From positions 248,001 to 312,000 of the forward strand of contig NIVC01001486.1 in NCBI GenBank assembly GCA_002269645.1: 64,000 nt of DNA, in the 5' to 3' direction. Positions 1,814 through 56,929 of the stretch are shown in pieces. Source of the stretch: Macrostomum lignano. Its lineage: Eukaryota. The position numbers were made by a program, and so were the translations under genes. A model generated the notes under the pieces. That model searched no databases. It was not told the DNA's origin and worked only from the letters and a program-made list of their open reading frames with translations. Position 1 is the first letter of the stretch. The number at the start of each line of letters is the position of its first letter.

Positions 1814-2573
1814 CTAGTCGCGCTGGTAGAGAGTCCAGTCGGGTCCGGTCAGGCTGGCTGGCGGGTAGGCGAACGCCAGCAGGTGGCAGGCGAGCAGCCG
1901 CTGGGAGAAAACAGCGGCCTGACAGTCGGCTCTGGCGCTGCACCGGAGCAGGCAGTCAGCGTCAGTCTGGGCAGCGGTCGGCCAGGACGAGGTCCTGGAG
2001 CTGTCGGTCTTGATGATGAGGCTGTTGCTTTTTACCACCGTGTAAAGGTTTTCTGAAAAAAAGTTAAAATTTGCATGTACGCTTGTCGCTTGATGAAGGT
2101 TATTGCCAAAAGTACACAGAACTGTTTTGTGTACTTTTCCAATATATCGAAAGCCGCTTACTGAAGTTTGTGTAGCTCAGATAGAACACCGAGTTGCGAT
2201 TTGGGCCACCGCACGTCTGCAGCGGGTTTCCTGTGCACTCTCTCTTGCAGTCGCCCTCGTTTCCTTTGCCCTGCGATCCATACGAGTTTCCACAGAAGCA
2301 CTGCAAACCAACCTGCACGCCGAAGTACGAGAATCCGCCCAGAGAGCAGGCGCTGCTGCACAGCTCGAGACTCATGCTGGTGCTGTAAATCACTGGGTCA
2401 GTAGAGTGAACTTTGAACGGACCCAGCTGGGTGACTCCACTTAGCGCGGTCAAGTCTCTAGCATGATCGGTGTAATCTACATAGCATCCAACATAGGTGT
2501 GATTGACCATCTTGCAGATCACGCAGGTCAGTAGTGCACAGAAAAATACAGTCAGCTGCAAAACTTGCGGCAT
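1814..2573 (-). CDS. WP1: secreted WSC + PAN/Apple-like protein, intact, 216 aa
   Basis: Exon 1 2573-2162 (MPQVLQLTVFFCALLTCVICK..YVGCYVD..MSLELCSSAC..GVQVGLQCFCGNS..DC..C.G..C.GG.NRNSVF), donor A|gtaagc. 109-bp intron. Acceptor tttttcag|. Exon 2 2052-1814 (..DCLLRCSARADCQAAVFSQRLLACHLL..WTLYQRD*). The exons join in frame. Confidence 0.9.
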
Positions 2574-3181
2574 GTTACTTTCAAGTTTATAGTTGATCAC
2601 TGTATTTTCAGAAACTGCTCAAAGCCCTAAGGATCAGTTTTAAAACGGCTTTTATGGCTACTTAGTGGAGTGGTTTTGGCCAGCCGCAGCGGCATTGGAT
2701 AATCTAGAAGGCACCAATCAGCTTACAGAAAAGCAGCGTGCTTTACATTTGTACATTTCGCAAGGGATGAGTTCTGGAAATGTCAGTTCATTAATCCGGT
2801 CTGTTAATTCTTGCTGATTTTCGATCAAGCACACAACTCATAAAAGCATCTACATGTATCAGCTATCAAAAGATGAACATTGGATCCATCTCTTCTATCA
2901 TAAAGCAATAACTAATAATCTTCGTAATGTACATGTACTCGTATTTTTTCAGTAGCTAAAACCAGCCTCCTAAAATGTTTCAAGAAATATATACAGTTTC
3001 CTGTCTTACTTGAGTAGTCCTTGAGCACGCATGCTTCCCGGAGATTTTGTTTGGCTTGCTTTGAATTCGTTTGGGATCTGAGCGGCTTTTTATTTCATGC
3101 ATCGGGCCGGGTCCCTTGGCCAATAGACTAAGCACAGATGACATTGCAGGCTTTTGACATAGACCAAATCGGGAGTACGAC

Positions 3182-4218
3182 GTTTGCTTGCGGGAAGTTT
3201 GCTTGCCGAACTTTGCTTGCCGAATTTTGCTTGCCGAACTTTGCTTGCCGAACTTTGCTTGCCGAATTTTGCTTGCCGAATTTTGCTTGCAGGAAATTTT
3301 CTTGCCGAACTTTGCTTGCAGGAATTTTGCTTGCGGAATTTTGCTTGCCGAATTTTGCTTGCAGGAAATTTTCTTGCTGTACATAAGCTTGCCGAACTTT
3401 GCTTGCAGGAAATTTGCTTGCGGAATTTTGCTTGCTGAAGTTTGCTCGCCGAACTTTGCTTGCAGGAAATTTTCTTGCGACGTTTGCCACCCAAAGTTTT
3501 GCGGGACCTTAAAGAAACCTATTTTTGAGCTCTTGTGTTTCTAATTTTCATTTTCTAAGATTCGTGGAAGCATTCTATATACTACATTCTTAGAATGAAA
3601 CTCTATAAGCCTAGTTTGAAAGCTTAGTGTCAAGTCAGTTTACGTCGACCCTGATAAGAATCCACTTGCAAAGCATCTGTAGTAAGTAATAATTGACTGA
3701 CCAATTTTACAAGCAATCAAAACAAGCAAGCAAACAAGAAAATAATTCTGCAAGTTAAAACCTTGCGATTGTGTGATTACAAATTTCTAGAAAGCAGACA
3801 TCAAAATTTCGCAAGCAGACTTCGGCAAGCAAAATTCCTGCAAGCAAAGCTCGGCAAGCAAACTTCGGCAGGCAAAGTTCCTGCAAGCAAATTTCCTGCA
3901 AGCAAAGTTCGGCGAGCAAACTTCAGCAAGCAAAATTCCGCAAGCAAAGTTCGGCAAGCAAAGTTCGGCAAGCAAAATTCGGCAAGCAAAGTTCGGCAAG
4001 CAAAATTCGGCAAGCAAATTTCCTGCAAGCAAAGTTCGGCAAGCAAAATTCGGCAAGCAAAGTTCGGCAAGCAAAGTTCGGCAAGCAAAGCTCGGCAAGC
4101 AAACTTCGGCAGGCAAAATTCCGCAAGCAAAGTTCGGCAAGCAGACTTCGGCAAGCAAAATTCTGCAAGCAAAATTCGGCAAGCAGACTTCGGCAAGCAA
4201 ATTTCCGCAAGCAAATTT
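3182..4218. mobile_element. Foldback-like element: two inverted arrays of a 14-15 bp unit (GCAAGCAAA[G/A]TTCG) around a ~325-bp spacer
   Basis: Left arm ~3182-3478 is (tttgcttgccgaa..)n. Right arm ~3804-4218 is the reverse complement (ggcaagcaaa.ttc)n. No coding capacity. Confidence 0.6.
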
Positions 4219-4557
4219 CATAGACCCGACCAAATCTGAGGGAAAGGCAGATATCTGAGAAATTATCGAGTTTTATATTCTCGATGCGAATCGAGATCTG
4301 TGGCTTATCGATTTAGGTCACGATTACTTTCGATTAACAATGCTTGTTTTTCGAGAACTTAATGACGAAAGTGCAGTTCTTCGTTCTCTCTTCGTTTCTT
4401 ACACGTTATTTTGTTCCAACAGAAATTCCAAAGTACTATATACTCGTATATTGATATATATTGACAATAATTTATTGGCCCGGTCAAGTAAATTTCTTTC
4501 GCATCAAATAAATGGTATATATTTAATGTTTACTCTTTACTTCTTAAAATATTTTAA

Positions 4558-5299: not shown

Positions 5300-6347
5300 G
5301 TGCTGCAGATGCTTCGACCTCAAGGACTCCGACGGTTGCCACTGCTCGTGATGCTGGAGGCTTGTCAGCAGATTTATCAAAGCAGCAGGTGATGCATAAA
5401 AAGGCCCACAAAATTGTCTCCAGTCGTTGATGTAATTTTACAGGTATGAAAATTAGTTTTACTCGATATAAGACAGCCCGAGTGCATGTACATAGTACGA
5501 GTCCATGGTATCAGCCCAGGCTTTGTCTCGCAATACCAAATGCTCGTAGCTGGGTGGGGGGGGCATCATCGTGGCGCCACTGCGACAGCCAGACAGAAAC
5601 TTTGTCAATTTCTCACTTCCGACCAGAAAACTTTCTCAGGGCTATCTAATCCCAACTCTTTCTCTGACTAGTGCTTATTCTTGTAGCTTGGGACAGTTTG
5701 AGAAGGAAGTCTTTTGTCTCTTTGTTTCAGTGCTTTTTTGTGTTTTTCACTCGCTTTCTTTGCATTGCACCCGAGCACAAGGAAAGTTTTCGCTCAGGAA
5801 GCCAAAAAAGTTGTTTCTATAGAGAAGTAGCTCCATATTCTTGCTCCTTGTTGTGTGTCTTCGCTTGCAAATCTTGTCTCTATGTGAATCAAGCCACGCG
5901 AGAGAAAAGTTATTCTCAGGAAACTGGGAAGCTGAAGCTGTTTCTAATAGAGGCTATAGAAGCGGGCATTGTTTGCAATTTTTCCCTTGCTGCCTGTGGC
6001 TCAATCGAAGAAGCAGCACTTCCTCCTCTTGCCACTTCCTCTCGCATAGAGTCAGAGAGACGCTGCGAGGTGTCTTCTGCTGCTAGCAACTTTTCTTGGC
6101 TTATTCGTTTCGGTCTGGTAGCGAGTAGCGATTTCAGTGGCAGACAGGCTCTGTTAAAACCGTTAGATTTATGCTGCAGATTTTTGCCAAGACTTCTCTG
6201 TCTTATTAGAATTCGGCATTAACGATGGCTTTGTGTATTTTACTTCTTAGACTGCGTTCAATTGGTTTGTTTGCTAAAAATGTTTTCAAGTATTTTCAGT
6301 GTCACTGCTGACTTCCGGTATGCCGTTGCTATGCTGTTGTTATGCCG

Positions 6348-7231
6348 CTAGTCGCGCTGGTAGAGAGTCCAGTCGGGTCCGGTCAGGCTGGCTGGCGGGT
6401 AGGCGAACGCCAGCAGGTGGCAGGCGAGCAGCCGCTGGGAGAAAACGGCGGCCTGACAGTCGGCTGTGGCGCTGCACCGGAGCAGGCAGTCCGCATCAGA
6501 CTGGGCAGCGGCCGGCCAGGACGTCTTGGAGCCGTCGGTCTTGATGAAGAGGCTGTTGTTCTTTACCACCGTGTAAAGGTTTTCTGAAAGAGGCACAGCA
6601 TGAATCATCTGGTGGTTGAATGCACTGATACTTTAAACTAAGACACTTTGGCTTTAATAAACACTTTTGGCACGTAAATTGCATTTGGAGAATCTTATTT
6701 GACTGTTTCAAAAGTATCAGAGTCAGTCGAGACTTAACTACACTCCTACTAAACAAGCAAAACCCACGAGTTCAGTTCACAACAGTGAAAATGCGATCCC
6801 AGTACGTCATGCTTACTAAAGTTCGAGTAGTTCAAGGAGTACACAGAGTTTCGGTTGATGCCGCCGCACCTCTGCAGCGGGTTTCCTCTGCAATTTTTAT
6901 TGCAGTCGTCGTCTTTGGCGGCGACGCCCTGCGATCCGAATGAGTTGCCGCAGAAGCACTGGGTTTCGGACTGCACGCCGAAGTGCGAGAACCTCCCCAG
7001 GGAGCAGACGCTGCTGCACAGCTCAATTGTCATTTCGTCACTGTTAACTAGCGGTGCAGCCGGCTGAACATGAAATTTGCCTAATTGTTTCAGGCCACTT
7101 AGTCCTGTCATGTCTCTACTTCCGTTCGTGTTGTCCACGTAGCAGCCCAAGTAGGAATGATTCAGTAGCTTGCAGGCCGCGCTGGTAAGCAGAGCGAAGA
7201 GAAAAACTAACTCTGGCGAAACCCCCGCCAT
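6348..7231 (-). CDS. WP2: secreted WSC + PAN/Apple-like protein, intact, 216 aa
   Basis: Exon 1 7231-6817 (MAGVSPELVFLFALLTSAACK..), donor A|gtaagc. 233-bp intron. Exon 2 6583-6348. In frame. Confidence 0.9.
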
Positions 7232-8710
7232 GGTGCCTGATGGCTGTCGTTTAAAGACCATCACGCGCGTCAATCCTCTGTTGTACACAAATTTATAAGC
7301 AATGATCCTCGTCAGTCTCATTTTTATTGGATAAAATACGAGCCTATCAGGGACCGATCAGCTAGGTTGAAAGCTTACTGAAAATTCATTGCGAGTAATG
7401 GTGAGAAGATAATCCTTATTTAAGTGAGGAGATCAGAAGGTTGACAAAACTTAGAAGTTTTTTTATGACCTGCGGTGCAGGTCACCCGTTCGATATTGAG
7501 ATAGATTACTTGTTTCAATTCGTCAGGAAGAGGTTTTAAGGCTGAATCGCGAAGACAAAGTGTGGTGCAATGTACATGTAGATAATATAGAGTCCTTTAT
7601 ATTAAAAATTTCAAGATTGATTGTTTAATTTAGATGGACTTGCCGGATATGGTAATTCGGTGAATTTTGCACTGCAACCGCTTTTGAAACCATTAATGGC
7701 ACTGTTTCAAGTTCTCAGAGGGTGTACACCGGACCTGGATTTCTAACCTGCCCCACAATCAGAACACAATTTCCTTTTTAAACTACTATAGGTAATATGT
7801 CTATGAATTCTAGTGATAAAAAATGAATTGAGCCTTTGATAGACCATGTTGAGTGAGCATTTCCTGTCTGACTTTTGTAATTCAGGTTTTGTTTGTGTAC
7901 TCAGTTTTGGTTGGCGCCTAAGGGACAGCTTAGAATTACCTGAACATCACCGATAGACAAATAACCCTAGACAAAAACCATAGAAACATAATCATAGACA
8001 AATACCCATAAACAGATTTCCACTGCTCGCACACATGCGTTACAGATGGACACGAAACTTTAGCAAAGCAGACAATATTGTTCCTGTACTGTTCCTTTAT
8101 GCTTGAATTACATGGAGATGCGATGACTAGGACGGTATTAATTGACAGCTCATCTTTTCATGAGTAGCCCGTTATAATCAAACATCTGTGCATGGTCGTA
8201 ACTCTAAAATAAGGCCTACTAGTACTCGTAGAGAGGCCAGCAAGGAGTCTCAGAAGTCAGCTGCCTACGATCGGAAATTTGGAAGTTTGTCAAAAATTTT
8301 CTCTATCGGCGCGTGAAAAAACAAGATGCATACAGCGCTCAGCTAGCAGTCTTGAATTCAGCACGTGGGTGCGAGAATCTTCCCAGCTTTCGACTGGCTT
8401 TCTGTAAATACGACACTTTAGCATAAACACCTGAGAACACCTGAAAACTCAAGCAAATTCCTTGGAAGGCTCAGGAGACTCGCAGCTGCTCCAATGTGGT
8501 AGGAAAATCGTTGACAAAAGCTAAGGTTTTTTTACTTTTTTTGCCTTCTTTGAAGGGAAAACTCTTTAAGAAATGTTTTCTCAGAAAGGCTGGTAGGTAG
8601 AACTGAGCAATGCGGCATTCACGACTTAATAGCTTAACAATTCTCACTAGAAAAATAGGAATAAAGTTTCTTGGTATTCTGTTGCATTTGTATTGAGCAG
8701 CGGCTCTCTG

Positions 8711-13785: not shown

Positions 13786-14518
13786 TCAGCCACGCTGGTA
13801 GAGAGTCCAGTCGGGTCCGGTCAGGCTGGCTGGCGGGTAGGCGAACGCCAGCAGGTGGCAGGCGAGCAGCCGCTCGGAGAAAACGGCGGCCTGGCAGTCG
13901 GCTTTGGCACTGCACCGGGCGAGGCAGTCCATGACGGATGGGGCAGCGGCCGGCCAGGACGAGGTCTTGCTGGTCTCCACAGTGAAGTTCGAATGCTTTA
14001 ACATCTTGTAGAAGTTTTGGTCTAAAACAGATTGTGGTTGAGATGTGTTTTAGAAAGGCCAACTGTAGATAGATTTGAAGTTCAACTAATCGTCTTAAGA
14101 ACAAAAGTTACTCACTCGGGTAGGTCAGAGCGAACACCGAGTTTCGCCATGGAGCTCCGCAAATCTGCGACGAGTTTCCTCTGCACTTTGTGCTGCAGTC
14201 GCTTTCGTTGGCTTTGCCCTGAGATCCGAAGGAGCTGCCGCAGAGGCACGCTTTTCCACTCTGCACACCAAAGTAGGCGAAGCCACCAAGTGAGCACACA
14301 CTGCTACAGAGCTCGTGCGACATGTCGGTGTTGCTCACACACCTGCTGCTAATGATTTCGTATTCGCCAATCCTTGTGACACCGCTTAGCTCGTTCAAGT
14401 CTCTGACTCCGCCAGTGAAGTCCACGTAGCAGCCAACATATGAGAAGCGGACGACCCTGCATGCCGCGCAGGTCATGAGAGCGCAGATAAAAACTGGCAG
14501 TTTCGACACCCGAAGCAT
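13786..14518 (-). CDS. WP3 (A-subfamily): secreted WSC + PAN/Apple-like protein, intact, 212 aa
   Basis: Exon 1 14518-14116, donor A|gtgagt. 94-bp intron. Exon 2 14021-13786 (NQNFYKMLKH..WTLYQRG*). Confidence 0.9.
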
Positions 14519-16825: not shown

Positions 16826-17540
16826 TCAGGTTTTGATGAACACAGCCCACTCCGGTCCGGTCAGGCTGGCTGGCGGGAAGGCGAACGGCAGCAGGCGGCA
16901 GGCGAGCAGCTGCTTGCAGAAGACGGCGCCGCTGCAGTTGGCTCTGGCGCTGCACTGGAGCAGGCAGTCCGCGTCAGACTGGGCAGCGGCCGGCCAGGAC
17001 GAGTCCACGGTAGAGGTCACCGTGATGTCCTTCAGCACAGTGTAGGCATTGTTGCCTGGAAGTTTTGGTTCCAACAATAGCGTTCCGCAATGTTTCATTC
17101 GAAAATCTATGAGAACGGAGCAAGGCTAACTTACTTGGGTAGTGCAGAGCGAACACGGAGTTGATGAAGGAGTCTCCGCAAATCTGCTCTGGGTTTCCCG
17201 TACACTGCTTGTTGCACTTGCTTTCGCTGAGCTGTCCGTGGAGTCCGTAGGAGCTGCCGCAGAAGCACTGCCTGCCGACCTGCACGCCGAAGTAGGGGAA
17301 GCGGCCCAGAGAGCAGACGTTGCTGCAGAACTCGTGCGACATGTTGTCGACGCCTTGCACTAGGTTGCCAACAGCAATGCTGTACGGCCCCAGATTATTC
17401 AGTCCTTTCAGACCTGTCAGGTCTCTGTTCAAGTTATCGCCGTCTTGGTAGCAACCGACATAAGAGAAATGAGCCACCCTGCCAGCTGCACAGGTCAGGA
17501 GGGCGCACAGCAACGCCGACTCTAACAGTGAGATTCTCAT
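16826..17540 (-). CDS. WP4: secreted WSC + PAN/Apple-like protein, intact, 211 aa (most divergent exon 2)
   Basis: Exon 1 17540-17135 (MRISLLESALLCALLTCAAGR..), donor A|gtaagt. 79-bp intron. Exon 2 17055-16826 (..DCLLQCSARANCSGAVFCKQLLACRLL..WAVFIKT*). Confidence 0.88.
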
Positions 17541-17689
17541 TCTAATTCACGAATTACAACGGGTGCAAGCTATCGAATCTTAACAAACGGAGCTTGGAAG
17601 CCTTTCTCAGACGAGCGTCACCCTTTTATCATTTTGTGAGTACAGGCATTCAGGTTTTATCCAATTAGACGGGTTCTGCTCACGGAAGA

Positions 17690-18075: not shown

Positions 18076-18204
18076 GTATTAAATGATTCCATATTTGAAT
18101 AGATGAACATACATTAAATAGTGTACAATTAACTCATGAAAATTATACCCATAGTACAGACGTGTCATGTAAAATTTTGTCGTAACTTATTGGGTTTTGC
18201 TAAT

Positions 18205-21320: not shown

Positions 21321-22174
21321 TAGAAACGCCTGCACTAGCATTCATATTTTCATCCAATCAGACGGGTTCTGCATACGGGGCAATTATGTAAAAAAACGAG
21401 AAACTTTGTTTCTTAGAAAAAATGGGGCTGATTTTGGGCAAAAGTTCATGACCCTGGAGGATCAGCACCCTCCATGACCCTGGCAGGATCAGCACCCTCA
21501 ATAGGGTACGGTGACAGGAAAATTTCATTTTTCAGCGCAAAAGTAGCGTCAGTTTTAATTGAAAGCAGATCAAATGCTCCCTCATCTTGGTAGCATAACT
21601 TGCATGTTTTATTGCTGCATTGATTCTTGTAAAGTTTTGTTTGTGAAAACAAGAGAATTGCTATATTTTTTATTTACTTACTTACTGTGAGAACATGACT
21701 TGAGCTCAAACTTTAGTCTCACGTGCTGCCACCGGGGATCAAAAGGCCTTCAGTGCGGTCAGTTATACCTTGCTATCACCAAAAAGAATGTTTGAATTCA
21801 ACACTACAAGAAATGTAAACCAAATTATTACACAAGGAGAAACGCGTTAATATTGTACCATGTAAAGTGACATGCCTGACTTTCTAACCACAAGGCATGT
21901 ACACTTTCTGTGCCTTGAGGTTAAGGGTTGGATGGGGAATCAAAACTGGAGGTGACGGCAGCGTAGATTCGAAAATAAAAAAAATCCGGCTTGCAGACAT
22001 CATGGCAGTGTGAGTAGGCCTAGAACTATTGCCAATTTTAATCGGTCAAAATATTTTATGTATTATTCCAGTAGATCAGATCACCGAATACGTTTCTGCT
22101 GAAATGCGTTTTACTAACTGCAAATTCCTTTCGTAAATAGGGTTCATCAGCACTGTGTTTTTTTTATATATTTG

Positions 22175-22417
22175 AGCGAAGCCACCAAGTGAGCACACAC
22201 TGCTGCAGAGCTCGTGCGACATGTCTGTGTTGCTCACACACCTGCTGCTAACGATTTCGAATTCGCCTATCCTTGCGACACCGCTTAGCCCGTTCAAGTC
22301 TCTAACTCAACCAGTGAAGTCCACGTAGCAGCCAACGTAGGAGAAGCGGACGACCCTGCGTGCCTCGCAGGTCAGGAGGGTGCAGACGAGAACTGGCAGT
22401 TTCGGCAGCCAAAGCAT
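22175..22417 (-). pseudogene. WP5 (A-subfamily): truncated WSC-PAN pseudogene
   Basis: ATG at 22417 (MLWLPKLPVLVCTLLTCEARRVVRFSYVGCYVDFTG*). Premature TGA at 22309-22307 where WP3 has Gly. Similarity stops after ..CSLGGFA at ~22175. There is no exon 2. Confidence 0.88.
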
Positions 22418-25400: not shown

Positions 25401-25544
25401 CGTATTTAAATAATTGCATCTAATTTTCTTCGGTGTGTTTTACTTACTCAGCAAATATAACAGTCCGCTGTATTGCTATCGCTCCAACTGAAACAAGTCT
25501 TACCGGCGTCGCGTCACTTTCCTTGACAATGGCGCTCACCAAGA

Positions 25545-26072: not shown

Positions 26073-26487
26073 TGGGCTTCAAGTAGTTCAAAGCGAACAC
26101 CGAGTTTCGATAAGGAGCTCCACAATTTTGCAGCGCGTTGCCAGTGCACGGACTGTTGCAGTCGCTCGGGTCTCCAGAGCCCTGCGACCCGAAGAAGTTG
26201 CCGCAGAAGCACTGGTCGCCATCCTGCACGCCGAAGTACAGAAACTTTCCCAGTGAGCAGGCGCGGCTGCACAGCTCGAGTGACATGCTGCTGCTGCTGT
26301 GTATTAAACAGCTTGCTGGATCCATGGAAAATGGACCCAGCCGGATGAATCCTGCAACTCCTGTCATGTCTCTGGCATTATCCGTGTAGTCCGCGTAGTA
26401 GCCCTCGTAGGTGCAACTGACCACCCTGCAGGTCGCGCAGGTCAGCAGAACGTGAAGAAAAATTTATACTTTCAAAGCGAATGACAT
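26073..26487 (-). pseudogene. WP6: WSC exon-1 pseudogene with no exon 2
   Basis: ATG at 26487, in-frame TAA at codon 8 (26466-26464). The first WSC Cys is lost (YEGYY). The donor A|gtgagt is retained at 26073/26072. No PAN exon is found before WP5. Confidence 0.85.
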
Positions 26488-28947: not shown

Positions 28948-29013
<66 letters not shown>

Positions 29014-30342: not shown

Positions 30343-30470
30343 CAGGCGCCTGCTCTCTAGGCAGATTCTCGTACTTCAGCGTGCATGTCGGCAAGCAGTG
30401 CTTCTGCGGCAACTCGTTCAGATCTCAAGGCAACACCAGCGGCTGCAACCAGCCGTGCTCTGGCAACTCG
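30343..30470 (+). pseudogene. Inverted WSC-exon fragment
   Basis: The + strand reads ACSLGRFSYFSVHVGKQCFCGNSFRSQGNTSGCNQPCSGNS, clearly the C-terminal half of the family WSC domain. Confidence 0.88.
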
Positions 30471-30843
30471 ATAGTCCTACATGCTAAAAATGATATTTTA
30501 AAAAACATTCAAACCAATAACCCACGTTGCAGATGCAGAGGAAAAGATCGTGTTTCGCAAGTTGTATTGGGCTTGGCTTAGCTTCTTTTGTTTATATTCA
30601 GATCGGTTGTCCAACATTGAATTGGATTGGATTGCTCAGGCTTGAGTGTTTTTATGAGCTACATTTTAATCAACCGCACTAACTATCACGAGACTTAGGC
30701 AATGTAACAGGACTAGTAACTGCAGGGATAGCTACTCGTATTTTTTATGTTTCCAAAGTAAAAATCTCAAGTTATTTATCGTTCATTGTTCTTCTTCTCC
30801 ATGCCGACACCGTCTTGTCGCAAGAGTCAAGCCCGTTTCGCGC

Positions 30844-31573
30844 TCAGCCACGCTGGTAGAGAGTCCAGTCGGGTCCGGTCAGGCTGGCTGGTGGTAGGCG
30901 AACGTCAGCAGGTGCAGGCGAGCAGCCGCTGGAGAAAACGGCGGCCTGGCAGTCGGCTCTGGCGCTGCAATGGAGCAGGCAGTCCGCGTCAGAATGGGCA
31001 GCGGCCGGCCAGGACGAGGTTTTGGAGCTGTCGGTCTTGACGAAGAGGCTGTTGTCCTTCTGAACCAGGTAGCAACGGTCTGAAATAGAGAAGTTTAGTG
31101 CCACATTTTCTTCATCCTGTTTTGATTGAGAAATTATTTCTGACCATGGATTAATACCTCCCGTCACTCACAGGGGTAGCTAAGAGCGAACACCGAGTTT
31201 CGGTAGGGAGCTCCGCAGATCTGCGATGAGTTTCCTATGCACGGTCTGTTGCAGTCGCTCTCTTTGCCTTTGCCCTGCGATCGATTGAGTTGCCGCAGAA
31301 GCACTCGACACCAACCTGCACCCCGAAGTACGAGAATCCGCCCAGAGAGCAGGCGCTGCTGCAAGCTCGAGAGTCATGCTTGCTCTTATGGAAGGGTCGT
31401 TTGACCGAATCTCAAACGGACCCAGACTGGGTGACTCCAGTCAGTCCGTCCAAGTCTCTGGCCTTGCCCGTGTAGTCCACGTAGCAACCCACGTACGAGT
31501 AATTGACAAACCTGCAGGTCGCGCAGGTAGCCAGAGCGCCGAGTAAAATCGAAATTCGCGATAGCTGCTCCAT
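30844..31573 (-). pseudogene. WP7 (B-subfamily): frameshifted WSC-PAN copy, either a pseudogene or an assembly error
   Basis: Exon 1 31573-31172 (MEQLSRISILLG..) has +1, -1 and -1 indels versus WP9 (402 vs 403 nt). Exon 2 31079-30844 has three single-C deletions (236 vs 239 nt). Splice sites are intact. Confidence 0.8.
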
Positions 31574-33891: not shown

Positions 33892-34620
33892 TCAGCCGCG
33901 CTGGTAGAGAGTCCAGTCGGGTCCGGTCAGGCTGGCTGGCGGGTAGGCGAACGCCAGCAGGCGGCAGGCGAGCAGCCGCTTGGAGAAAACGGCGGCTAGG
34001 CAGTCGGCTGTGGCGCTGCACCGGGCCAGGCAGTCCATGACGGATGGGCAGCGGCCGGCCAGGACGAGGTCTTGCTGGTCTCCACAGTGAGGATCGAGTG
34101 CTTGATCATCTTGTAAAAGTTTTTGTCTGAAACAGATTGTGGTTGAGATGTGTTTCAGAAAGGACCACCTGTACATAACCCTGAAAGTCAATCGTCGCAA
34201 GAACAAAAGCTACTCACTCGGGTAGGTCAGAGCGAACACCGAGTTTCGCCTTGGAGCTCCGCAGATCTGCGATGAGTTTCCTCTGCACTTGGTGCTGCAG
34301 TCGCTTTCGTTGGCTTTGCCCTGAGATCCGAAGGAGTTGCTGCAGAGGCACGCTTTTCCAACCTGCACCCCAAAGTAGGCGAAGCCGCCAAGTGAGCACA
34401 CACTGCTGCAGAGCTCGTGCGACATTTCGGTCTTGTTTATCCACTTTCTGAAGGTGATTTCGTACTCGCCAATCCTTGTGACACCGCTTAGCCCGTTCAA
34501 GTCTCTGACTTCACCATTTAAATCCACGTAGCAACCAACGTAGGAGAAGCGGACGACCCTGCATGCAGCGCAGGTCAGGAGGGCGCAGATAAAAACTGGC
34601 AGTTTCGGCACCCGAAGCAT
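33892..34620 (-). pseudogene. WP8 (A-subfamily): WSC-PAN copy with one 1-bp deletion in exon 2, either a recent pseudogene or an assembly error
   Basis: Exon 1 34620-34218 is intact. 91-bp intron. Exon 2 34126-33892 has GCTGCCCATCC where WP3 and WP10 have GCTGCCCCATCC (G-run at 34046-34048). Confidence 0.8.
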
Positions 34621-45704: not shown

Positions 45705-46486
45705 TCAGCCACGCTGGTAGAGAGTCCAGTCGGGTCCGGTCAGGCTGGCTGGTGGGTAGGCGAACGCAAGCAGGTGGCAGGCGAGCAGCCGCTTCGAAAA
45801 AACGGCGGCCTGGCAGGCGGCTCTGGCGCTGCACCGGAGCAGGCAGTCCGCGACAGACTGGTCAACGGCCGGCCAGGACGAGGTTTTGGAGCTGTCGGTC
45901 TTGACGAAGAGGCTGTTGTCCTTCTGAACCAGGTAGTAACGGTCTAAAATAGAAATTTGCGAAACAACCACCGTTTTTCTGCTGTCTCTTTCATTAGGTC
46001 TTGAAATAATTTTAAGATGCCGCAAAATAGTTGATTGAAAATTATTTCAGACCGTGGATTAATCAATTGCCCGTCACACTCACTCGGGTAGGTCAGAGCG
46101 AACACCGAGTTGCGAGCTCGACCTCCGCATATTTGCTGCGAGTTTCCACTGCACTGTCTATTGCAGTCGCTCTCATTGCCTTTGCCCTGCGATCCGATTG
46201 AGTTGCCGCAGAAGCACTGCTGACCGACCTGCACCCCGAAGTACGAGAATCCGCCCAGAGAGCAGGCGCTGCTGCACAGCTCGAGAGTCATGCTAGTTTT
46301 TATGAAAGGGTCGTTTGACCGAACCTTAAACGGACCCATCTGGGTGACTTCGGTCAGTCCGTCTAAATCTCTGGCTTTGCCCGTGTAGTCCACGTAGCAA
46401 CCCACGTACGAGTAATTGACAAACCTGCAGGTCGCGCAGGTAAGCAGAGCGCCGAGTAAAATTGAAATTCGCGATAGTTGCTCCAT
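45705..46486 (-). CDS. WP9 (B-subfamily): secreted WSC + PAN/Apple-like protein, intact, 213 aa
   Basis: Exon 1 46486-46084 (an alternative in-frame ATG lies at 46492), donor A|gtgagt. 140-bp intron. Exon 2 45943-45705. Confidence 0.9.
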
Positions 46487-49400
46487 GTGCATTACGAGTA
46501 TACTTTGGATATTTTACTGTTAATGGAATTAGTCGGGTTTATAGCATAGTATGAAACCCATTGGCAGTGGATAGCAGACCAGCAACCAATCACATCGGCC
46601 GCGTTCTTTCGCTAGTTTTTTTCCTGGACGAATCCGATGCTAATCGCGCCTAGCAGTTGGCTCAATACTGTAACAGTTATGCGTCTGTTGTGCTCACATT
46701 CTCGTGGCATATTGTCGGTTTCTCAGTAAAGCTGAGGTTGCTCATTTTTATTTACCTAAGATGGAAAATTACTGAAGCTCACAGTCGACACTTCCTGATA
46801 AGACTTTCGATGAGTTATGGAAGTTGTGTTGTTTTTTCTGCAAAGTGATTTTTGAGTTTTTATCTTAAATCTTCTCACTAAAAACTTAAACTTTTTATTT
46901 TGAAATAGCTTGTGTCGACTCAACGCTTCTCTGAGATGACATTGGAATTAAGCCCACATGCAACGGACTTCAATGACTACACTTTTTTGGTTAAATAAGC
47001 GACATTCGTTTCTCATTTCTCTTATTCATTTCAGAGACTACTGTTTAAATCAGAATTCGCGATCACAACGGAAGACTAGCTGATTTAGATTATTGTAATT
47101 GAAAAGAACTCAAGCAGCCCAGTTTATATATTAAAGCTTATAACAATTTTCTGCATCGATAGTTGCATGTAGTACCGGATACGGCAGATATACGAGAGTA
47201 CGGCAGTAAAGTTTTGCAGAGCCACTGTAACTTCCATTAGTTACGATTAGCTTCGATTTGCCGCATTTTCTGCTTTGAGTCCTTCGGCCAGGTGAAACAA
47301 TACTTATCCGCTTCTGCAAAGAAGCAAGTACTGGCAGCAGAAGTTGCGGCAGACTTCATCCGGCACTGAATCTGCCTGAGCGGAGGCAAAGTCTGATTAC
47401 ACAGCGACTTTGCTTACCGAAGCGAAAGTTAAAAGCGCTTAAAATGTTTAAGAAGTCGGGATCTTTGTAGCAAGACCGGCAGACTCCATCAATCTGGATA
47501 TAAAACGTTTTAAATTTTAACAGAAAGAATGCACGACGCGCGTAGAGGCTACCCTAGCATTTTGGCTGTTAATGAAGTAATGGATCTGTGGAAGACTCAC
47601 CCACCATTAAAAGAGGCAGCTATCAACACAGCATTTGTACGACAATAATTCAAGTTAAAAATACCGTTTAGGGAAGAAGCTTCTTTCACTATTCACAGAA
47701 TAATTGTCTCTGTTGAATGAACCCAGGCTAAATTCACTTTTGAAAGTAAAACTTCTGTAGGCAAAAACTCAATTTGAAAATCTGATTCATGCCCTTTGAC
47801 ATCTCTGTCGGTAAAAACATTTTGCTCTCAATTGTACATGCACAAACGAGATTTCAATCTGATTCCAGTACGACAATCAATAGTTAAGACTCAATTGGTT
47901 ATGCGTGACGGTCGGTCTGTTTAACATTGACGCTAACAAATATTTGGTTATTCGCTGCGTGCTTGTGGCTACCCTGGTGCAACGCTGTCCGCAACAGCGT
48001 CCCACAACAAGTTTCTACGGCAACTCTGCCCGTTCCCCAGACTCCTGAGCGCATGCAAGCACGCCGATACTGTACTCAGGCACGCTCTCATACGCACGCT
48101 CACACAGGGTTTGTTGTTGTTAAACGGGTGGGAAGCGTGTGCTTTCCGCGGATCAGCCCAGAGAAAGGCTCTACCGCTGGATATTGTAGGGGCCATACTA
48201 CCAGGGGTATATAGCCCGAGAGGCCCAGATTGGGACTGGGACTCATGGCCTAGCTAAGAAACCTTATTGGATGCTACTAGCCCAAGCCTATGGGAACACC
48301 GCCAACCCAACACTGGAATCAGGAGACGGGTGCAAAGACTGATCCACCCAAGCCACCCCCAACGACAAGTCCCGAGTGTGCGCGAAAAAAGATTGGGATT
48401 GAAAATTTCGGAAAATTTCTCGAAAGCGGTCCAAGAGCGAGAAACCCGAGTCTACAGAAATGGCTTTAAGATTGGAGCCAATCTCTTATAGGGCTGCAAG
48501 CCTCAAGGCTTTTTCACTACTCAGCTCTAATAAGCCCAAGTCAAGGGGTTGGAGAGGAGCACCACAGAGCAAAGAGACACCGGACTCAGCCGGTATTCCC
48601 CGATTCAGGACGAGCATCTTCCCCAGTACACCAATCCACTGTCAGAGATGAGAGCCAGAGACACAATAAGCAGGGAGACAACCAGAGGAGCCAGCAGATG
48701 GACCAAGGGAGCAGATGGAATCACAGAGGCGAGATCTATAAACACAAAGATGCCACGAAGGCAGGAATAAAAGCAAAGGAGGAGGATCACCCAACCTCTG
48801 GGGCTCAGCCTCAGGGCTGGCATCAACTGGACTCTACTGTACACTTTTGTGAATGGTCGTCTTTCCTGCAGGGCGGGTACGACCGGGGGGCTCAAGTCCC
48901 GATCTATCCACACTGCAGTCCAGAGTCACAATCACTCCAGGTACACCCCACTAAATCAAGGCAGGGTCAAAAAAGAAAGGGTTATTTTTAGAATGTACAT
49001 CACCTCCGGTGAGGACACTTGAGCTACCCGAGTGGATAGGCCAATTGGATTGCGCACAACCCGAGAAATGCCGCCAGAGGGCAGCCGGGGTAAAAACAGT
49101 CAGAGACCGACTTTACGGCTGGGTAAAACACAGGGTTTACGGCGACCCTGACTTTGTAATCGTCAGGCATATTCACTCTCTGTGCGTGTGGGTTGGTGTG
49201 AATTTTCGTTCACAAGCCCCAAAATGAATGTGGCCTGGTGTCAATCAAACAACGAGTATGATAATTTGGGCAATTTTGGCTTTGAATTAATAAGAGCGCG
49301 ATAGGCAAGATCGAATGAAAAAAAAACTGATAGCTACCAAAAAGAAAAGAAGGCGGACATTGCATGGTTTCAAAGCTGCCATTATTAATAAAAGACGAAG

Positions 49401-50635: not shown

Positions 50636-50687
50636 TCAGCCACCCACGAACAGAATCCAGTCGGGTCCGGTCAGGCTGGCTGGCGGG
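50636..50687 (-). pseudogene. Remnant of the 3' end of a family exon 2
   Basis: Reads PPASLTGPDWILFVGG* on the minus strand and contains the family string ccagtcgggtccggtcaggctggctggcggg. Confidence 0.8.
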
Positions 50688-51501
50688 CATGGGAGAAACG
50701 GCTGGGAGAGAACGTTCGTGAATAGAAAATATGTCAAGAATACACTTTAAGCGTATGTCTACTCAATCAACTGCTTTTTGAATAGATTTCATCAGTTAAG
50801 ACACATCGCAACTTCGCAACACAGAATACGTGATTTCGTGAAGTCTATTCGGCCATTCTTAAGAGACTTAAAAACTCCAACTGCAGTCAAAGAGGCGCTT
50901 GCAAACCTGAAAATGATCTGGCGGCAGCAAGCTAATGCTATTGAACTCATTTTTCTGTCCTATATTTAGGTAGCAAGAAAGAAATCGGTAATTCCCTTCT
51001 AAGACCTGTGTGTTTAAACAGGGAAGCAGCAGTGTTGACCAGCCTGAGAAACTGTTTGCTCTACCATTAGTCCCGGCGTTTAGTCAACAAATAAAATATG
51101 AAACTTCGTCTTAACACATCATTGACGCAGTCCTGACTGCATGGAAACTGAGATGTATGTGCCTTGTAAACTATCATTGAATCCCTGCTTTTTCGACCCT
51201 TTCTTCCAGACACGGTTTGCTACTGCTTTTGTGAGCCATGGTGCATGTATTCTCGAATCGGAGCTAGAATTGCTGCCAATAATTGCTGAAAAACACATCT
51301 TTCATTGCCCTTTCTCAGTGAAATAAAGAATAAATGACATTATTTCTAGATGCCAAAAAAATTTTCTCTTGATAACTTCCCACACTTTTTATTGATTGAC
51401 AAGCGGAATTGATCGGAACAGACTGCAAAGTTTAGAACCGCCACAAAACTTCAAAGTTTCAGACTGATCGTGCCAGAATGTTTCGTCAAGTGCTTTGTAA
51501 C

Positions 51502-52231
51502 TCAGCCACGCTGGTAGAGAGTCCAGTCGGGTCCGGTCAGGCTGGCTGGCGGGTAGGCGAACGCCAGCAGGTGGCAGGCGAGCAGCCGCTCGAAGAAAAC
51601 GGCGGCCTGGCAGTCGGCTGTGGCGCTGCACCGGGCCAGGCAGTCCATGACGGATGGGGCAGCGGCCGGCCAGGACGAGGTCTTGCTGGTCTCCACGGCG
51701 AGGGTAGAATCCTTCATCATCTTGTAGAAGTTTTGGTCTAAAACAGATTGTGGTTGAGATGTGTTTTAGAAAGGCCCCCTGTAGATAGCCTTGAAGGTCA
51801 ATCAATCGTCGCAAGAACAAAAGTTACTCACTCGGGTAGGTCAGAGCGAACACCGAGTTTCGCCATGGAGCTCCGCAGATCTGCGATGAGTTTCCTTTGC
51901 ACTGTGTGCTGCAGTCGCTTTCGTTGGCTTTGCCCTGAGATCCGAGGAAGCTGCCACAGAGGCACGATTTTCCACTCTGCACACCAAAGTAGGCGAAGCC
52001 ACCAAGTGAGCACACACTGCTGCAGAGCTCGTGCGACATTTCGGTCTTGTTTATCCACTTTCTGGAGGTGATTTCGTATTCGCCAATCCTTGTGACACCG
52101 TTTAGCCCGTTCAAGTCTCTGATTTCGCTAGTGTCCACGTAGCAGCCAACATATGAGAAGCGGACGACCCTGCATGCCGCGCAGGTCAGGAGGGCGCAGA
52201 TCAGAACTAGCAGTTTCGGCACCCAAAGCAT
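51502..52231 (-). CDS. WP10 (A-subfamily): secreted WSC + PAN/Apple-like protein, intact, 211 aa
   Basis: Exon 1 52231-51832. 94-bp intron. Exon 2 51737-51502. Confidence 0.9.
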
Positions 52232-53129: not shown

Positions 53130-54150
53130 ATTTCCTATTCAACATTGATTTTAATTGCGGAACTCTCTCCACCAAAGTTTTTCGGAAAAGCACGTTGACC
53201 AATCTCATCCTGAACTTCAATGCTTTATGTCCAAGACAGTGGAAATCCGGCCTGATTAGATGTCTGCTCCACAGAGCTTTCAGTGTCTGCAACACCTGGA
53301 CTAACTTTGACCAAGAAGTGATTTTTCTGACCAAAATGTTTCAACAAAATGGCTATCCTCGTGCGTTTATCCACTCTCTCATTCACAAATTCGTCTCTGA
53401 GAAAATCGTCAATCAGCCTAGCGCTAAAGCCGATCCCATCGATCTCAACGAACCAACTCTTGTCCTCCATTTCTTTGGCTATCCTTCTCAACTTTTCAAA
53501 AATAAAATCTGCAAATTATTCCGCAACTCGCTTAATTGCAACATGGCCGTGTCATCTTTCGTTCTGCTAAGGTTGGCAACTTTGTCGGTCGGTTGAAGTC
53601 ACGTGTTCCCTGTGCTCTTCGTGCTGGTGTCGTTTATCAGTTCAACTGCTCTGATGACCAGAGCGTCTCCTACCTGGGGAAGACAAAAAGGCACCTGCAC
53701 ACTAGAATCAGGGAGCACTGGCTGAAACCGTCGGCTTTCCAAAACCATCTCTTAGAGTGTATTAGTTGCTACGACTGCAAACCCGAAGAGCGCTTCAAGG
53801 TCATTGATCAATGCTCATTTGACTCCAAACTCCAGATAATTGAAGCGCTGTACATTAAAGCGCATTCCCCCAACCTCAATACTCAACTCCAACACAGTGG
53901 CGCGGGACATGTTTTCCGTGTGTTCTGAGGGAGGGGACACTGGATGTACATTATATACTTCTAACTATTTCGACTATCATTCCGTCCCTAGACTTTGCCT
54001 CTCGACTTTTGGACCAACAAACATGTACTTCAAATATTGATTGATTTTACACCCAAAATTTTGTATTTATTTACTGCCGATCTCACTCGTTTCTTTCGCT
54101 CAAAAATAAACCTAAAGATGCACAGTATCGTGCGAAACGCGTCGTTCAAT
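53130..54150 (+). mobile_element. 5'-truncated Penelope-like retroelement (RT thumb plus GIY-YIG endonuclease), frameshifted
   Basis: VFRKSTLT..LNF...CP..WK.GLI.CLLHRA..VC....F..E...L...F.QNGYP..FI is the PLE RT C-terminus. After a frameshift near 53540-53580 comes GVVYQFNC..YLGKTKRHLHTRIREH..FKVID..LQIIEALYI..SPNLN, a GIY-YIG domain. Stop at 53926-53928. Confidence 0.9.
54112..54143 (+). ncRNA. Degenerate minimal type-I hammerhead ribozyme at the PLE 3' end
   Basis: CTAAAGA(T)-GCAC-agtatc-GTGC-GAAAC-GC-GTC. The core CUGANGA carries a G-to-A change. Stem II is GCAC/GTGC, and stem III is the palindromic ACGCGT seen in dimer-type minimal HHRs of Penelope-like elements. Confidence 0.55.
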
Positions 54151-54435
54151 TAAATTAATTTAATGTTGATTTTGCCTTCCTATTCATCGTACTTGCCAAG
54201 CGAGCAACTTTACCTGAATTTCATATTCGTACGAGTAAGCTACTCGCACACATGCCAAGATCATCTGAGAAGCACTTCGAAACAAATTATGTCGAATGGA
54301 AACCTGATTTTGTCACTCATTCAAAATATATTTGTTCTTAGCTTCTCTTCCAACATCTAGTAGATTATGTGTATTAGTTGCATTCCTGAGTGGCGTACAG
54401 TTCTGGATGTAGTTTCAGACACGGACACTTTTGAG

Positions 54436-54647
54436 ACAGTCCAGTCGGGTCCGGTCAGGCTGGCTGGCAGGTAGACGAACGCCAGCAGGTGGCAGGCGAG
54501 CAGCCGCTCGGAGAAAACGGCGGCCTGGCAGTCGGCTGTGGCGCTGCACCGGAGCAGGCAGTCAGCGTCAGACTGGGCAGCGGCCGGCCAGGAGGAGTTC
54601 AAGCACTAGTTGGACGAGACTGTTTTGCTTCATCGTTGTGTAGACGT
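54436..54647 (-). pseudogene. Orphan family exon 2 (PAN-like), frameshifted
   Basis: Acceptor ctttcag|AC at 54648/54647. Reads VYTTMKQNSLV, then a 1-nt frame offset before SSWPAAAQSDADCLLRCSATADCQAAVFSERLLACHLLAFVYLPASLTGPDWT. The normal stop is missing. There is no exon 1 between it and WP11. Confidence 0.85.
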
Positions 54648-55460
54648 CTGAAAGTCAGCGTCTATGTCAGTAAGAATACCTGACTCATTGCTTCATTCAA
54701 ACAGAATTCATTTGCTGTTTCTAAAAAAGTGCATTACTAAATCCATACAAGGCTGGTATACCTTAGTAAAATGTACTTAAAACCGTTAATAACATCGCTA
54801 AAGTTTTATTAGCGATGTCACCTAGGTGACTAGGTCGTAAATTCAAAAACTGGTGCCTTGTCCAGCCTTCTTGGAGGTGACAATAATTTTAAGGACATGC
54901 TTATATTTTCATAAATGGATCGTATCAGTCCAGGTAATTGGGTCTGGAAATCGTTCAAAACAAAAATAGAGCTATCAAACATGCGGCTGGATATTCCGAA
55001 TTTTTGTCAATTTTGTTCTGTGCAGAGTCATTGGGTGGCTGCACTCTGGAGTAAGTGAGTCTATTAAAGTGTCTGGGTCCAACTGTATTGTTCACGGAGC
55101 AGTGAATCTACTGTTGCATGGTAATAATTATGCCAAAAGCTAGTATGATTTTGTGAGTATCTTGCGGCGAGATTTTCTTAGAAATGGACTGGAGGCCGGT
55201 AACCGGAAAGGCACGTTTATTTGTCGTTTTGCTAAGTGCATTTTGTAAGCACTCGAGCAATCAGATTTCTATCGACCGAATTGGATAAAATATTTTTTTT
55301 CTTAAGATCGGCCATTGTTCGGTCTGGATCCCTGCATACCCGGCACACTTGCTGGAACTCACATCAGCAAGGTCCGCAAAGTGAGTGAGTTCTTCAATAA
55401 ATGAGAAAGAATTATTTTATGTTTTGATTTGCATCTCGATTTTTATTTATACTGCAATTA

Positions 55461-56055
55461 CACTCAGCAACAGTCAGAAGTTCCACCCTCCAAACGAGGT
55501 GAATTTTTCTCACTTATTGCGAGAGACGCAACTTACCGGCAAACGCGAAGCTTATTAAAACTTGGGGGTGGCTTGGGACTGCATAACGCATGGTACAAAA
55601 CAAAAGCCGCCACACCGAGCCGATGCTGTTAGTCAACTGAAAGAACAGCTGCAGCTGCGCACTCTGCGCTGGTCTTCCCGGTCCCCAGACATGAATCATG
55701 TCTGGGACTTCCTAAAACGCAGCTTTCGAAAAGAGAATCCACCACAGAATGTTGCCACTGAAAACGCTTGGCAGCAGCTTCCCCAGGACTTTCTGCGCCG
55801 CCTCATCCTGATCCTCATTCTCATCCGCAGTTCTGCGTGCGAAGGGATCCCACACGCGGTACTAAGCATCGCGATTCTAACTGCATATTGCATGCAAAAA
55901 AAACTGTTCTGATTTTGTGCGACTAAACGTTTATTACTGATTCAATAAACTTTACCTTCCTCGTGGCGGCTTAGTTGCGTAACTGGAGGGTGGAATTGTA
56001 AGTGAGAAGTTGTCGCAATAAGTGAGCAAATTTTCATCTCGCTTGGAGGGTGGAA
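55461..56055 (+). mobile_element. Internally deleted Tc1/mariner-family element
   Basis: Inverted repeats of ~42 bp at 55481-55522 and 56013-56055 (TTCCACCCTCCAA.CGAG.TGAA..TT..TCACTTATTGCGA). The left end is TA|CACTC. The internal remnant PHRA..LRWSSRSPDMNHVWDFLKR..PP..AWQQLPQDFLRRLI matches the Tc1 WPxxSPDLNPIEHVW motif. Confidence 0.75.
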
Positions 56056-56195
56056 ATTTTACAATCATGCTTCAAGATGCTTTTAGTTGCGTTAAAAGCG
56101 AGAGATTGTGTCGCCTCCACACAAAATGGGTTAAAATAGTCAACTAAACTGTTTAATAATATTCGCAAGACATCCCAGTCTGGTGCTGCGTTCTC

Positions 56196-56929
56196 TCAGC
56201 CACGCTGGTAGAGAGTCCAGTCGGGTCCGGTCAGGCTGGCCGGCGGGTAGGCGAACGCCAGCAGGTGGCACTCAAGCTGGAGCTGGGAGAAAACGGCGGC
56301 CTGGCAGTCGGCTGTGGCGCTGCACCACAGTAGACAGTCCGCGTCAGATTTGGCAGCAGCCGGCCAGGATGAGGTCTCGGACGAGATGACGGTGAGACTG
56401 TTCTGCTTCAGCACAGTGTAGAAGTTTTTGTCTGAAATCAGTTTTGTCAGTTTAGATGGCAGTTTTACTTTTCACCCATACCGATAAAACGGGTATTATT
56501 TCCACTGTGGCAAACAGAATCAATTCACTCACTGGGGTAGCTCAGCTCGAAGACGGAATTGCGGTTAGCCGCTCCGCACTTCTGCCCCGAATTTCCTGTG
56601 CAGAGATTGCTGCACTGGCTTTCTCCGGCTGCACCATGGACTCCGAAGGAGTTTCCGCAGAAGCACTGCTCACCAACCTGGATACCGAAGTACCGGAAGC
56701 CGCCTAGAGAGCAGACGCTACCGCACAGCTCGTGCGTCATTGTGGTCTTGTTGTACACGTAACCGCCAAATGTGATGCTGAGTTCACCGATGTTGCTGAC
56801 TCCGAGTAGTCCATTCAAGTCCCTTGAGCTTGAGCTGTCCACATAGCAGCCTCTGTAAAAGAAACTGATGGACTCAGAGCAGGTCATGAAGGCCAGAAGC
56901 CATATAAGCAGTTGCTCAAGTTGATTCAT
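56196..56929 (-). CDS. WP11: secreted WSC + PAN/Apple-like protein, intact, 210 aa (divergent exon 1)
   Basis: Exon 1 56929-56533 (MNQLEQLLIWLLAFMTCSES..), donor A|gtgagt. 101-bp intron. Exon 2 56431-56196. Confidence 0.9.

Follow-up and report, generated by a model that had tools for sequence, protein, structure and literature searches.

The 64,000-nt stretch of Macrostomum lignano DNA analysed here (the window) contains, at 1814-56929, a tandem array of genes for small secreted proteins in which a WSC domain is followed by a C-terminal PAN/apple domain. The array is real but of an ordinary kind, a lineage-specific tandem family of secreted lectin-like proteins, and it forms an uncharacterised branch of a class of genes whose abundance in this flatworm was already known. 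Its one unusual feature, as judged from comparison of the copies, is that the PAN half appears to be held near-identical through gene conversion while the WSC half diverges. We consider it reasonably probable that the array as a whole encodes small secreted two-module glycoproteins with a conversion-homogenised PAN domain, which would act as lectin-like adaptors, probably in a reproductive secretion. We are highly confident of the anatomy and of how the array evolves, and only moderately so, or less, of the ligand and the tissue.

The elements of the array were located by tblastn over the window with both exons of a single copy, translated, as the queries, and gene models were built from six-frame translation, exon junctions and an exhaustive search of ATG, GT and AG positions. 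This yielded 14 elements of one WSC-PAN family (c1 to c14), all on the minus strand except for one inverted fragment: seven intact genes, two frameshifted copies, two relics retaining exon 1 only and three small fragments. An earlier reading of the same DNA (the original prediction) had counted 11 copies and four fragments, 15 elements in all. Its seven intact genes, two frameshifted copies and two pseudogenes are upheld, but the fragments number three, the fourth not rising above noise. The co-orientation that it described holds for every element bar the inverted fragment c7. Each intact gene consists of two exons separated by a single GT-AG phase-1 intron (79–233 nt) and encodes a protein of 210–216 aa, and the splice junction is reproduced by three independently annotated proteins (P0002, P0003 and P0016). 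Duplication as an artefact of assembly is ruled out because the copies differ from one another by 8–43% in exon 1. A bacterial or viral origin is also ruled out by the presence of spliceosomal introns, and the close homologues are all from M. lignano.

All seven intact copies match the Pfam WSC family (PF01822) at 49.9–62.3 bits against a cut-off of 27.8 (E 1e-13 to 5e-17), and distant members of the family also score above this cut-off. The eight WSC cysteines are invariant in alignments, a CGG motif is present, and the cysteine pattern is as described for Wsc1 (PMC9024836). Structure models (AF2) were built from database-identical proteins and from exon translations. In the full-length model (pLDDT 61.5) the WSC part reaches 62–82 per 10-residue block, and the top Foldseek matches for this half of the protein are Kremen (E 4.5e-4) and yeast Wsc1 (E 8.6e-4; TM-score to target 0.60).

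The C-terminal domain matches PAN_1 (PF00024) at 16.5–25.8 bits against a cut-off of 21.4. Five of the seven intact copies lie above the cut-off (21.7–25.8), c4 (16.5) and c10 (20.2) lie below it, and relatives elsewhere reach 29 bits. Because these scores are borderline, a profile of the domain was built from 11 diverse members, among which the four PAN cysteines are invariant, with shifts in spacing of 1–2 residues in the distant ones. When searched against PDB sequences, the profile retrieved PAN/apple chains exclusively down to E 0.2, in the order TgMIC4 (3e-5), SML-2 (1e-4), the PAN domain of a fungal copper oxidase and HGF N domains. The exon-2 model (pLDDT 70) adopts a strand-helix-strand arrangement in which the helix (residues 30–39) bears the first two cysteines. 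Without exception, the first 47 Foldseek matches of this model are PAN modules, with probabilities of 0.84–1.00 for the first 44 and 0.5–0.7 for the last three, and include the HGF N domain (TM-score to query up to 0.73) and SML-2 (0.61, rmsd 2.6 Å). Pfam (at these borderline scores), the PDB profile search and Foldseek all point to the PAN/apple identity that had been proposed for this domain, just as the WSC assignment of the N-terminal part is supported above, and the 47 leading matches answer the concern, raised at the same time, that the C-terminal domain might not model as PAN/apple. On its predicted fold, this domain is a PAN/apple module. The WSC domain itself has a PAN fold (PMC9024836), and the protein would therefore comprise two PAN-superfamily modules joined by a low-confidence linker.

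The call of secretion rests on Kyte-Doolittle hydropathy averaged over 19 residues. In the intact copies the maximum falls at residues 1–27 (1.5–2.2) and values elsewhere are at most 1.43, such that there is no second membrane-grade segment. The predicted cleavage site is preceded by small residues (e.g. AAC, with R following the site). This single N-terminal hydrophobic segment agrees with the earlier suggestion that the proteins are secreted and have no transmembrane segment. The WSC part of each protein contains eight cysteines and the C-terminal part follows the pattern C-x3-C-x5-C-x11-C; all 8+4 cysteines are retained in the intact copies, and one to four N-x-S/T sequons are present per protein. 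The hydrophobic N-terminus, the eight WSC cysteines, the C-terminal spacing and the N-glycosylation sequons had each been listed in the original prediction, and each is confirmed in the intact copies.

The case for gene conversion rests on pairwise identity, synonymous divergence (dS), nearest neighbours, GC content and a mosaic tract. We define the PAN core as a 160-nt stretch of exon 2, which is carried by ten copies: at 6362..6521 on the minus strand, for example (from TCCTGGCCG to GACTGGACTCTCT), and in the other copies at 1828-1987, 13800-13959, 16840-16999, 30858-31014, 33906-34064, 45719-45878, 51516-51675, 54434-54593 and 56210-56369. Identity across the core is 80–97.5% among the ten copies with a pairwise median of 89.9%, compared to a median of 64.7% (range 57–92%) for exon 1, and the core is the more similar of the two in all 36 of the 36 pairs. 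Among the intact copies, with the exception of the recent pair c3-c12, dS in the WSC exon is 1.0–1.7, which is saturated, against 0.07–0.37 in the PAN part of the same pairs. The core is also GC-rich (0.67–0.71, or 0.78–0.88 at third codon positions, GC3); exon 1 has a GC3 of 0.65–0.73 and the introns are 34–42% GC. Conservation starts inside exon 2 and stops near the stop codon, and the 3' flanks split into separate groups.

The two exons also disagree about which copies are most closely related. By exon 1 the nearest neighbours of c1 are c10 and c8, and by the PAN core its nearest neighbour is c2, which is also its physical neighbour. The PAN cores of pseudogene c8 and of the orphan exon c13 are likewise closest to c2, and the dead copies c8, c9 and c13 keep the core at ~90–95% identity. 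What looks like an individual conversion tract is captured by a second genomic copy of the locus on contig NIVC01000462.1, which is 96–98.6% identical to the window. The counterpart of c3 on that contig is ~96–98% identical in exon 1, the 3' flank and the 3' end of exon 2, and 94% identical in the intron. Divergence rises to 14.8% of sites in the 5' part of exon 2, compared to 3.4% elsewhere (Fisher p = 8e-8), and the variant sites match c12 in the linker and c2/c8 in the N-terminal half of the PAN domain. A mini-cluster of the same family 420 kb away does not carry the PAN core at the nucleotide level, which suggests that homogenisation is local to the array.

The contrast between the exons, the discordance in nearest neighbours, the c3 mosaic and the local distribution of the core together point to birth-and-death evolution combined with conversion that is confined to the PAN exon. 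On these comparisons we are highly confident that the exon-2 PAN core evolves in concert, apparently through local, GC-biased, non-allelic gene conversion. The birth-and-death process that had been proposed is borne out by the presence of paralogues of varied age, pseudogenes and a difference in copy number, although not in pure form, because exon 2 converts. Seven of the 14 elements are dead or partial. The sister contig holds an extra frameshifted WSC-PAN copy (6545-7246 of locus L001, NIVC01000462.1) between the counterparts of c2 and c3, which the window lacks; the contigs may represent two haplotypes, or else duplicates that arose in the known recent duplication of the genome. We conclude with high confidence that the array grows and decays via short tandem duplications, which take in a gene and a few hundred bp, and via pseudogenisation and deletion.

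At the left of the array, c1 (1814..2573, minus strand, as for all the copies that follow except c7; intact, 216 aa) has exon 1 at 2162-2573, encoding the signal peptide and WSC domain, an intron at 2053-2161 and exon 2 at 1814-2052, encoding the linker and PAN domain (Pfam WSC E 2e-14, PAN_1 22.4 bits). A thioredoxin-glutathione-reductase-like gene lies directly to its left, and we therefore take c1 as the left edge of the array. The c2 gene (6348..7231; intact, 216 aa from the ATG at 7231) has exon 1 at 6817-7231 and exon 2 at 6348-6583, with a further in-frame ATG upstream at 7321 (WSC E 2e-15, PAN_1 21.7 bits). It is followed by c3 (13786..14518; intact, 212 aa; exon 1 at 14116-14518, exon 2 at 13786-14021) and c4 (16826..17540; intact, 211 aa; exon 1 at 17135-17540, exon 2 at 16826-17055). 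The latter is the most divergent copy: its PAN_1 score falls below the curated cut-off and its PAN core is 80–88% identical to the others.

The next five elements are all damaged. An exon-1 fragment without exon 2, c5 (22169..22405), covers residues ~6-84 (tblastn 46% identity, E 1e-16), and c6 (26083..26463) is an exon-1-only pseudogene whose leader contains a stop codon and in which tyrosine takes the place of the first WSC cysteine. The inverted fragment c7 (30348..30473, plus strand) corresponds to residues ~75-119 of exon 1 (tblastn E 1e-9). In pseudogene c8 (30847..31573), exon 1 carries a stop codon and a frameshift, and exon 2 has lost the fourth PAN cysteine through three 1-nt deletions. 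The frameshift in c9 (33895..34620) is a 1-nt deletion in exon 2 at the point where the PAN core begins; its exon 1 is intact and is 91–92% identical to those of c3 and c12. Beyond these lie c10 (45705..46492; intact, 215 aa; exon 1 at 46084-46492, exon 2 at 45705-45943; WSC E 5e-17), c11 (~50640..50713), which is a ~56-nt remnant of the 3' end of exon 2, and c12 (51502..52231; intact, 211 aa), a recent duplicate of c3 and c9 with an overall dS to c3 of 0.087. The orphan exon-2 fragment c13 (54429..54599) is without exon 1, and has a PAN core 95.6% identical to that of c2 and a linker resembling that of c14 (56196..56929; intact, 210 aa), the final copy inside the window. Most copies share a promoter layout with TATAAA at -55 to -66 and CCAAT/ATTGG at -84 to -125 from the ATG (at window positions 7297 and 7330 for c2, and 14576 and 14602 for c3). 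This layout is also found in pseudogenes c8 and c9, and a poly(A) signal is present in most copies.

The space between the genes is rich in repeats. A 23-nt satellite (TGGTTGTAGGTTCTACATAGGTC) occupies 37391-40995 (3.6 kb, ~158 copies), and a related short 23-nt array at 30146-30340 adjoins the inverted fragment c7 and pseudogene c8. At the right of the window, a 161-nt satellite (61395-64000; at least 16 copies with 99% identity) continues past the end. A 41-nt tandem repeat (25531-25910, nine copies) stands at the expected place of c6 exon 2, suggesting that this exon was lost by repeat expansion or replacement. An open reading frame (ORF) at 53536-53928 on the plus strand, beside the orphan exon c13, contains a GIY-YIG endonuclease domain (Pfam E 1.2e-5) and is probably the remnant of a Penelope-like retroelement. 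Two mutually inverted 14-nt arrays between c1 and c2 (3183-3478 and 3811-4219), an 18-nt minisatellite (18204-18958, 43 copies) and a 1.4-kb GA-rich stretch of low complexity (28196-29625) give rise to many spurious long ORFs.

The system had originally been put forward as a candidate undescribed one, which overstates its novelty: the genes are public (A0A1I8GNZ2, Mlig023418, Mlig032201), more than 40 M. lignano protein clusters share their layout, and the class of secreted WSC proteins to which they belong has been published. The c1 protein is 100% identical to P0002 (UniProt A0A1I8GNZ2) and is contained in P0014 (NCBI BOX15_Mlig023418g2), and c2 is contained exactly in P0016 (NCBI PAA67386, BOX15_Mlig032201g1). 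The DNA surrounding the gene for the latter matches the window at 100% identity over 17,246 bp and places the window at NIVC01001486.1:248001-312000 of assembly GCA_002269645.1. P0021 (UniProt A0A1I8GNZ7) and c14 show two differences in the last 150 residues, and the older ML2 annotation predicts proteins like c3, c4 and c14. A first homology search returned M. lignano proteins only. When 1.84 billion representative proteins were searched by profile with HMMER, 9,393 matched, nearly all of them multi-WSC proteins, and those that matched over the full length in a single stretch were exclusively from M. lignano. The >40 clusters come from a separate profile search; they comprise proteins of ~190–290 aa encoded on several contigs, and family ids at other loci include Mlig003751, 011376, 016881, 012529, 003631 and 005479. 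The mini-cluster mentioned above consists of three WSC-PAN genes of the Mlig003751 type (NIVC01000462.1:674076-695033, ~420 kb from the sister array; genes at 6082-6778, 10265-10952 and 17280-17969 of locus L003), one of which is in the opposite orientation and none of which has the homogenised core. Outside Macrostomum, a few environmental proteins join WSC to PAN_4. One of these, P0277, is a 211-aa protein with the same order of signal peptide, WSC and PAN, and the minimal architecture is therefore unnamed, as had been stated, but not unique.

We propose the following model for these proteins. In each, a cleavable signal peptide would lead into a four-disulfide WSC domain, followed by a poorly modelled, sequon-bearing linker of ~25 residues and a minimal four-cysteine PAN/apple domain. 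Non-allelic gene conversion appears to overwrite the GC-rich 160-nt stretch of exon 2 repeatedly, such that one PAN module is common to all the copies and the WSC exon has diverged to synonymous saturation. WSC and PAN/apple folds are used for extracellular carbohydrate or protein binding, and the products may act outside the cell as soluble, bivalent lectin-like adaptors. In this inferred constant-anchor, variable-head arrangement, the constant PAN module would dock to one common partner, either glycan or protein, and the variable WSC module would confer different ligand specificities.

The setting would be a glandular secretion, probably reproductive, in the prostate or seminal fluid. This is the most likely setting because small secreted, multi-copy WSC proteins form a large part of the prostate-limited transcripts in this species. 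The 76 prostate-limited transcripts are rich in WSC-type matches (Weber 2018 Table S1, PMC5977470), and the most frequent descriptions given there, 'fungistatic metabolite' and 'transmembrane receptor', both accompany such matches. RNA815_80.4, which appears as Mlig-pro5 in the primer table of Weber 2019 (PMC6953679), has two WSC domains and is required for a prostate antigen, and Mlig-pro46 and 'several other' seminal-fluid candidates resemble WSCD2. Secreted WSC proteins are a major class among the prostate seminal-fluid candidates of M. lignano (PMC5977470, PMC6953679, PMC4490696). The entry 'Plasminogen [C. gigas]', which is the best match of two prostate transcripts, was considered as a lead to PAN domains and set aside as not diagnostic, since the same oyster protein is listed beside WSC proteins in the Arbore 2015 supplement annotating RNA815_80.4.

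Several observations weigh against this picture. Positive selection was not detected: dN/dS in the WSC part is 0.2–0.4 for old pairs, in which dS is saturated, and 0.08–1.06 for recent pairs, and the WSC variation is concentrated in the stretch preceding the WSC helix. The PAN_1 scores are borderline, and the structural models are of moderate confidence only (pLDDT 61.5 and 70). The WSC domain of Kremen takes part in protein binding, and any carbohydrate binding by the array proteins is putative. The published dsRNA and in situ primers of 18 of the 76 seminal-fluid candidates, which were tested by RNA interference (RNAi) and include Mlig-pro46 and -pro63, find no match in the window at up to four mismatches, and none of the Mlig_3_7 gene ids of these 18 is common to the family. 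With none of the 18 in the family, the reproductive reading is the most likely of several and not a finding. The ids Mlig023418, Mlig032201, Mlig012784, Mlig005356, Mlig005479 and Mlig021789 are unmentioned in the texts and supplements of the M. lignano literature searched. In the 17 kb of the window over which NCBI calls were compared (locus L002, covering c1-c3), only c1 and c2 are called and the intact c3 is not; c10 has no identical protein in any public source and on this ground counts as unannotated. Several of the 'intact' copies may consequently be silent.

The absence of all 18 best-studied seminal-fluid candidates from the family leaves room for a different setting, in which the proteins would be lectins of innate immunity or mucosal defence in the epidermis, gut or pharyngeal glands; their WSC heads would recognise microbial glycans (e.g. 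beta-glucans) and the PAN module would recruit an effector. In fungi, WSC domains bind polysaccharides of fungal and plant origin. Among solved structures, the PAN module is closest to apicomplexan lectins that bind galactose, and immune lectin families of invertebrates typically place a diversified head on a stalk that is constant. We nevertheless regard this alternative as unlikely, given that elevated dN/dS is not found and that the documented home of small secreted WSC proteins in M. lignano is the prostate (PMC5977470, PMC4490696).

On another view there is no diversified system. The array could be mostly debris, with c1 and c2 the sole working genes and the other open copies young, unexpressed duplicates in decay. 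Such a view accommodates the NCBI calls in the c1-c3 stretch, the lack of a public protein for c10, the visible death of half of the elements and an intergenic space full of satellites with a retroelement remnant. We think it doubtful, and somewhat more so than the immune reading. Exon-1 dS above 1 between c4, c10, c14 and the rest, together with dN/dS of 0.2–0.4, indicates ORFs that have long been open under purifying selection, the 8+4 cysteines are all kept, and the TATA/CCAAT layout is retained in most copies. The ML2 annotation, moreover, predicts c3-, c4- and c14-like proteins. We take the NCBI annotation to be transcript-based, in which case c1 and c2 would have transcript support; in an annotation of that kind multi-mapping reads can mask paralogues.

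Within the PAN core, a 28-nt sequence (CCAGCCAGCCTGACCGGACCCGACTGGA) occurs at 11 sites in the window (50656-50683, 1834-1861, 6368-6395 and eight more) against 0 expected, and is exact at nine of them. One of the exact sites is in the c11 remnant, where a 32-nt perfect run gives way to ~70% identity and recognisable homology spans ~56 nt, which makes the perfect core of this relic puzzling. It is conceivable, though improbable, that conversion is itself maintained, possibly via the invariant 28–33-nt core as a hotspot or via another sequence-level element, and that it keeps PAN docking uniform as the WSC heads diversify into an arms-race repertoire, for hermaphrodite sexual conflict or for microbe recognition. 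If such a system of constant and variable modules were real, its logic would be analogous to that of other diversified receptor families in invertebrates.

Least probable is that the near-identity of the PAN core reflects a nucleotide-level element (an RNA structure, small-RNA target, antisense gene or protein-binding DNA site) instead of conversion: every copy does lose conservation abruptly close to its stop codon, the c11 remnant itself keeps the 28-nt core without a mismatch, and antisense ORFs lie above every PAN exon, but RNA folding of the conserved core shows no excess (z = -0.18) and no Rfam match is found, the distant family members 420 kb off are without the core, comparison of the two genomic copies of c3 reveals patches in which paralogue sequence has been substituted, and the exon discordance and high GC3 are signatures of conversion. 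The antisense ORFs (~80 aa; e.g. 1808-2056, 6342-6587 and 51478-51741, all on the plus strand) are expected at 70% GC, and we read them as a by-product of such sequence and not as genes.

M. lignano serves as a model organism in the study of hermaphrodite sexual selection, and unexplained WSC proteins are numerous among its seminal-fluid candidates. The array represents a cleanly bounded WSC-PAN subfamily, of which at least two copies are called by NCBI, and lends itself directly to RNAi and in situ hybridisation. Because the PAN exons are nearly identical, RNA-seq reads will multi-map and probes and dsRNA will cross-react, so that copy-specific reagents must target exon 1. The genes also combine two modes of evolution within 750 bp, with synonymous saturation in exon 1 and apparently conversion-driven identity in exon 2, and could be used to study what sets the limits of conversion tracts and what effect GC-biased conversion has on coding sequence.

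The nearest known system is found in the same species. The prostate WSC candidates (Mlig-pro4, -pro5, -pro11, -pro46 and others) are small, predicted-secreted WSC proteins encoded at multi-copy loci (Mlig024181.g1-g10), and like the array family they are annotated only via WSC matches. Those examined are different genes, some with two WSC domains (RNA815_80.4), and a C-terminal PAN domain is not reported for them. For the WSC domain, the best fold matches are Kremen1 (5fws) and yeast Wsc1 (7pz2), with which the flatworm proteins have the eight cysteines and the CGG motif in common. Kremen is a Kringle-WSC-CUB transmembrane co-receptor for Dkk and Wsc1 is a membrane stress sensor, whereas the flatworm proteins have no Kringle, CUB, Ser/Thr-rich stalk or membrane anchor. 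Pfam finds WSC and PAN only, and none of the hallmarks of Kremen or of WSCD1-2 (Kringle, CUB and transmembrane segment, or sulfotransferase).

For the C-terminal domain, the best profile and fold matches are the apicomplexan microneme lectins SML-2 of Sarcocystis muris (2yil) and MIC4 of Toxoplasma gondii (4a5v, 2ll3). These are also secreted, and share with the array PAN module a helix pinned to the sheet by a nested C1-C4, C2-C3 cysteine pattern. They differ in consisting of tandem apple repeats without WSC, and at ~20% identity their galactose binding cannot be transferred by homology. The environmental proteins P0277 (211 aa), P0282 and P0155 (JGI and Logan assemblies) have WSC joined to PAN_4, and P0277 has the same minimal layout of ~210 aa. 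Their PAN domain is of a different subtype (PF14295) with other cysteine spacing, and the similarity (~35% identity) is limited to the WSC half, which suggests that they are probably an independent combination of the domains rather than orthologues.

Partial concerted evolution by gene conversion has been discussed for conopeptide precursors and for other tandem families of secreted proteins. The array resembles such families in the sharp contrast in synonymous divergence between two parts of one gene. It differs from them in that the variable part does not show dN/dS above 1, and in that the conserved part is not a signal peptide or pro-peptide but a folded C-terminal domain.

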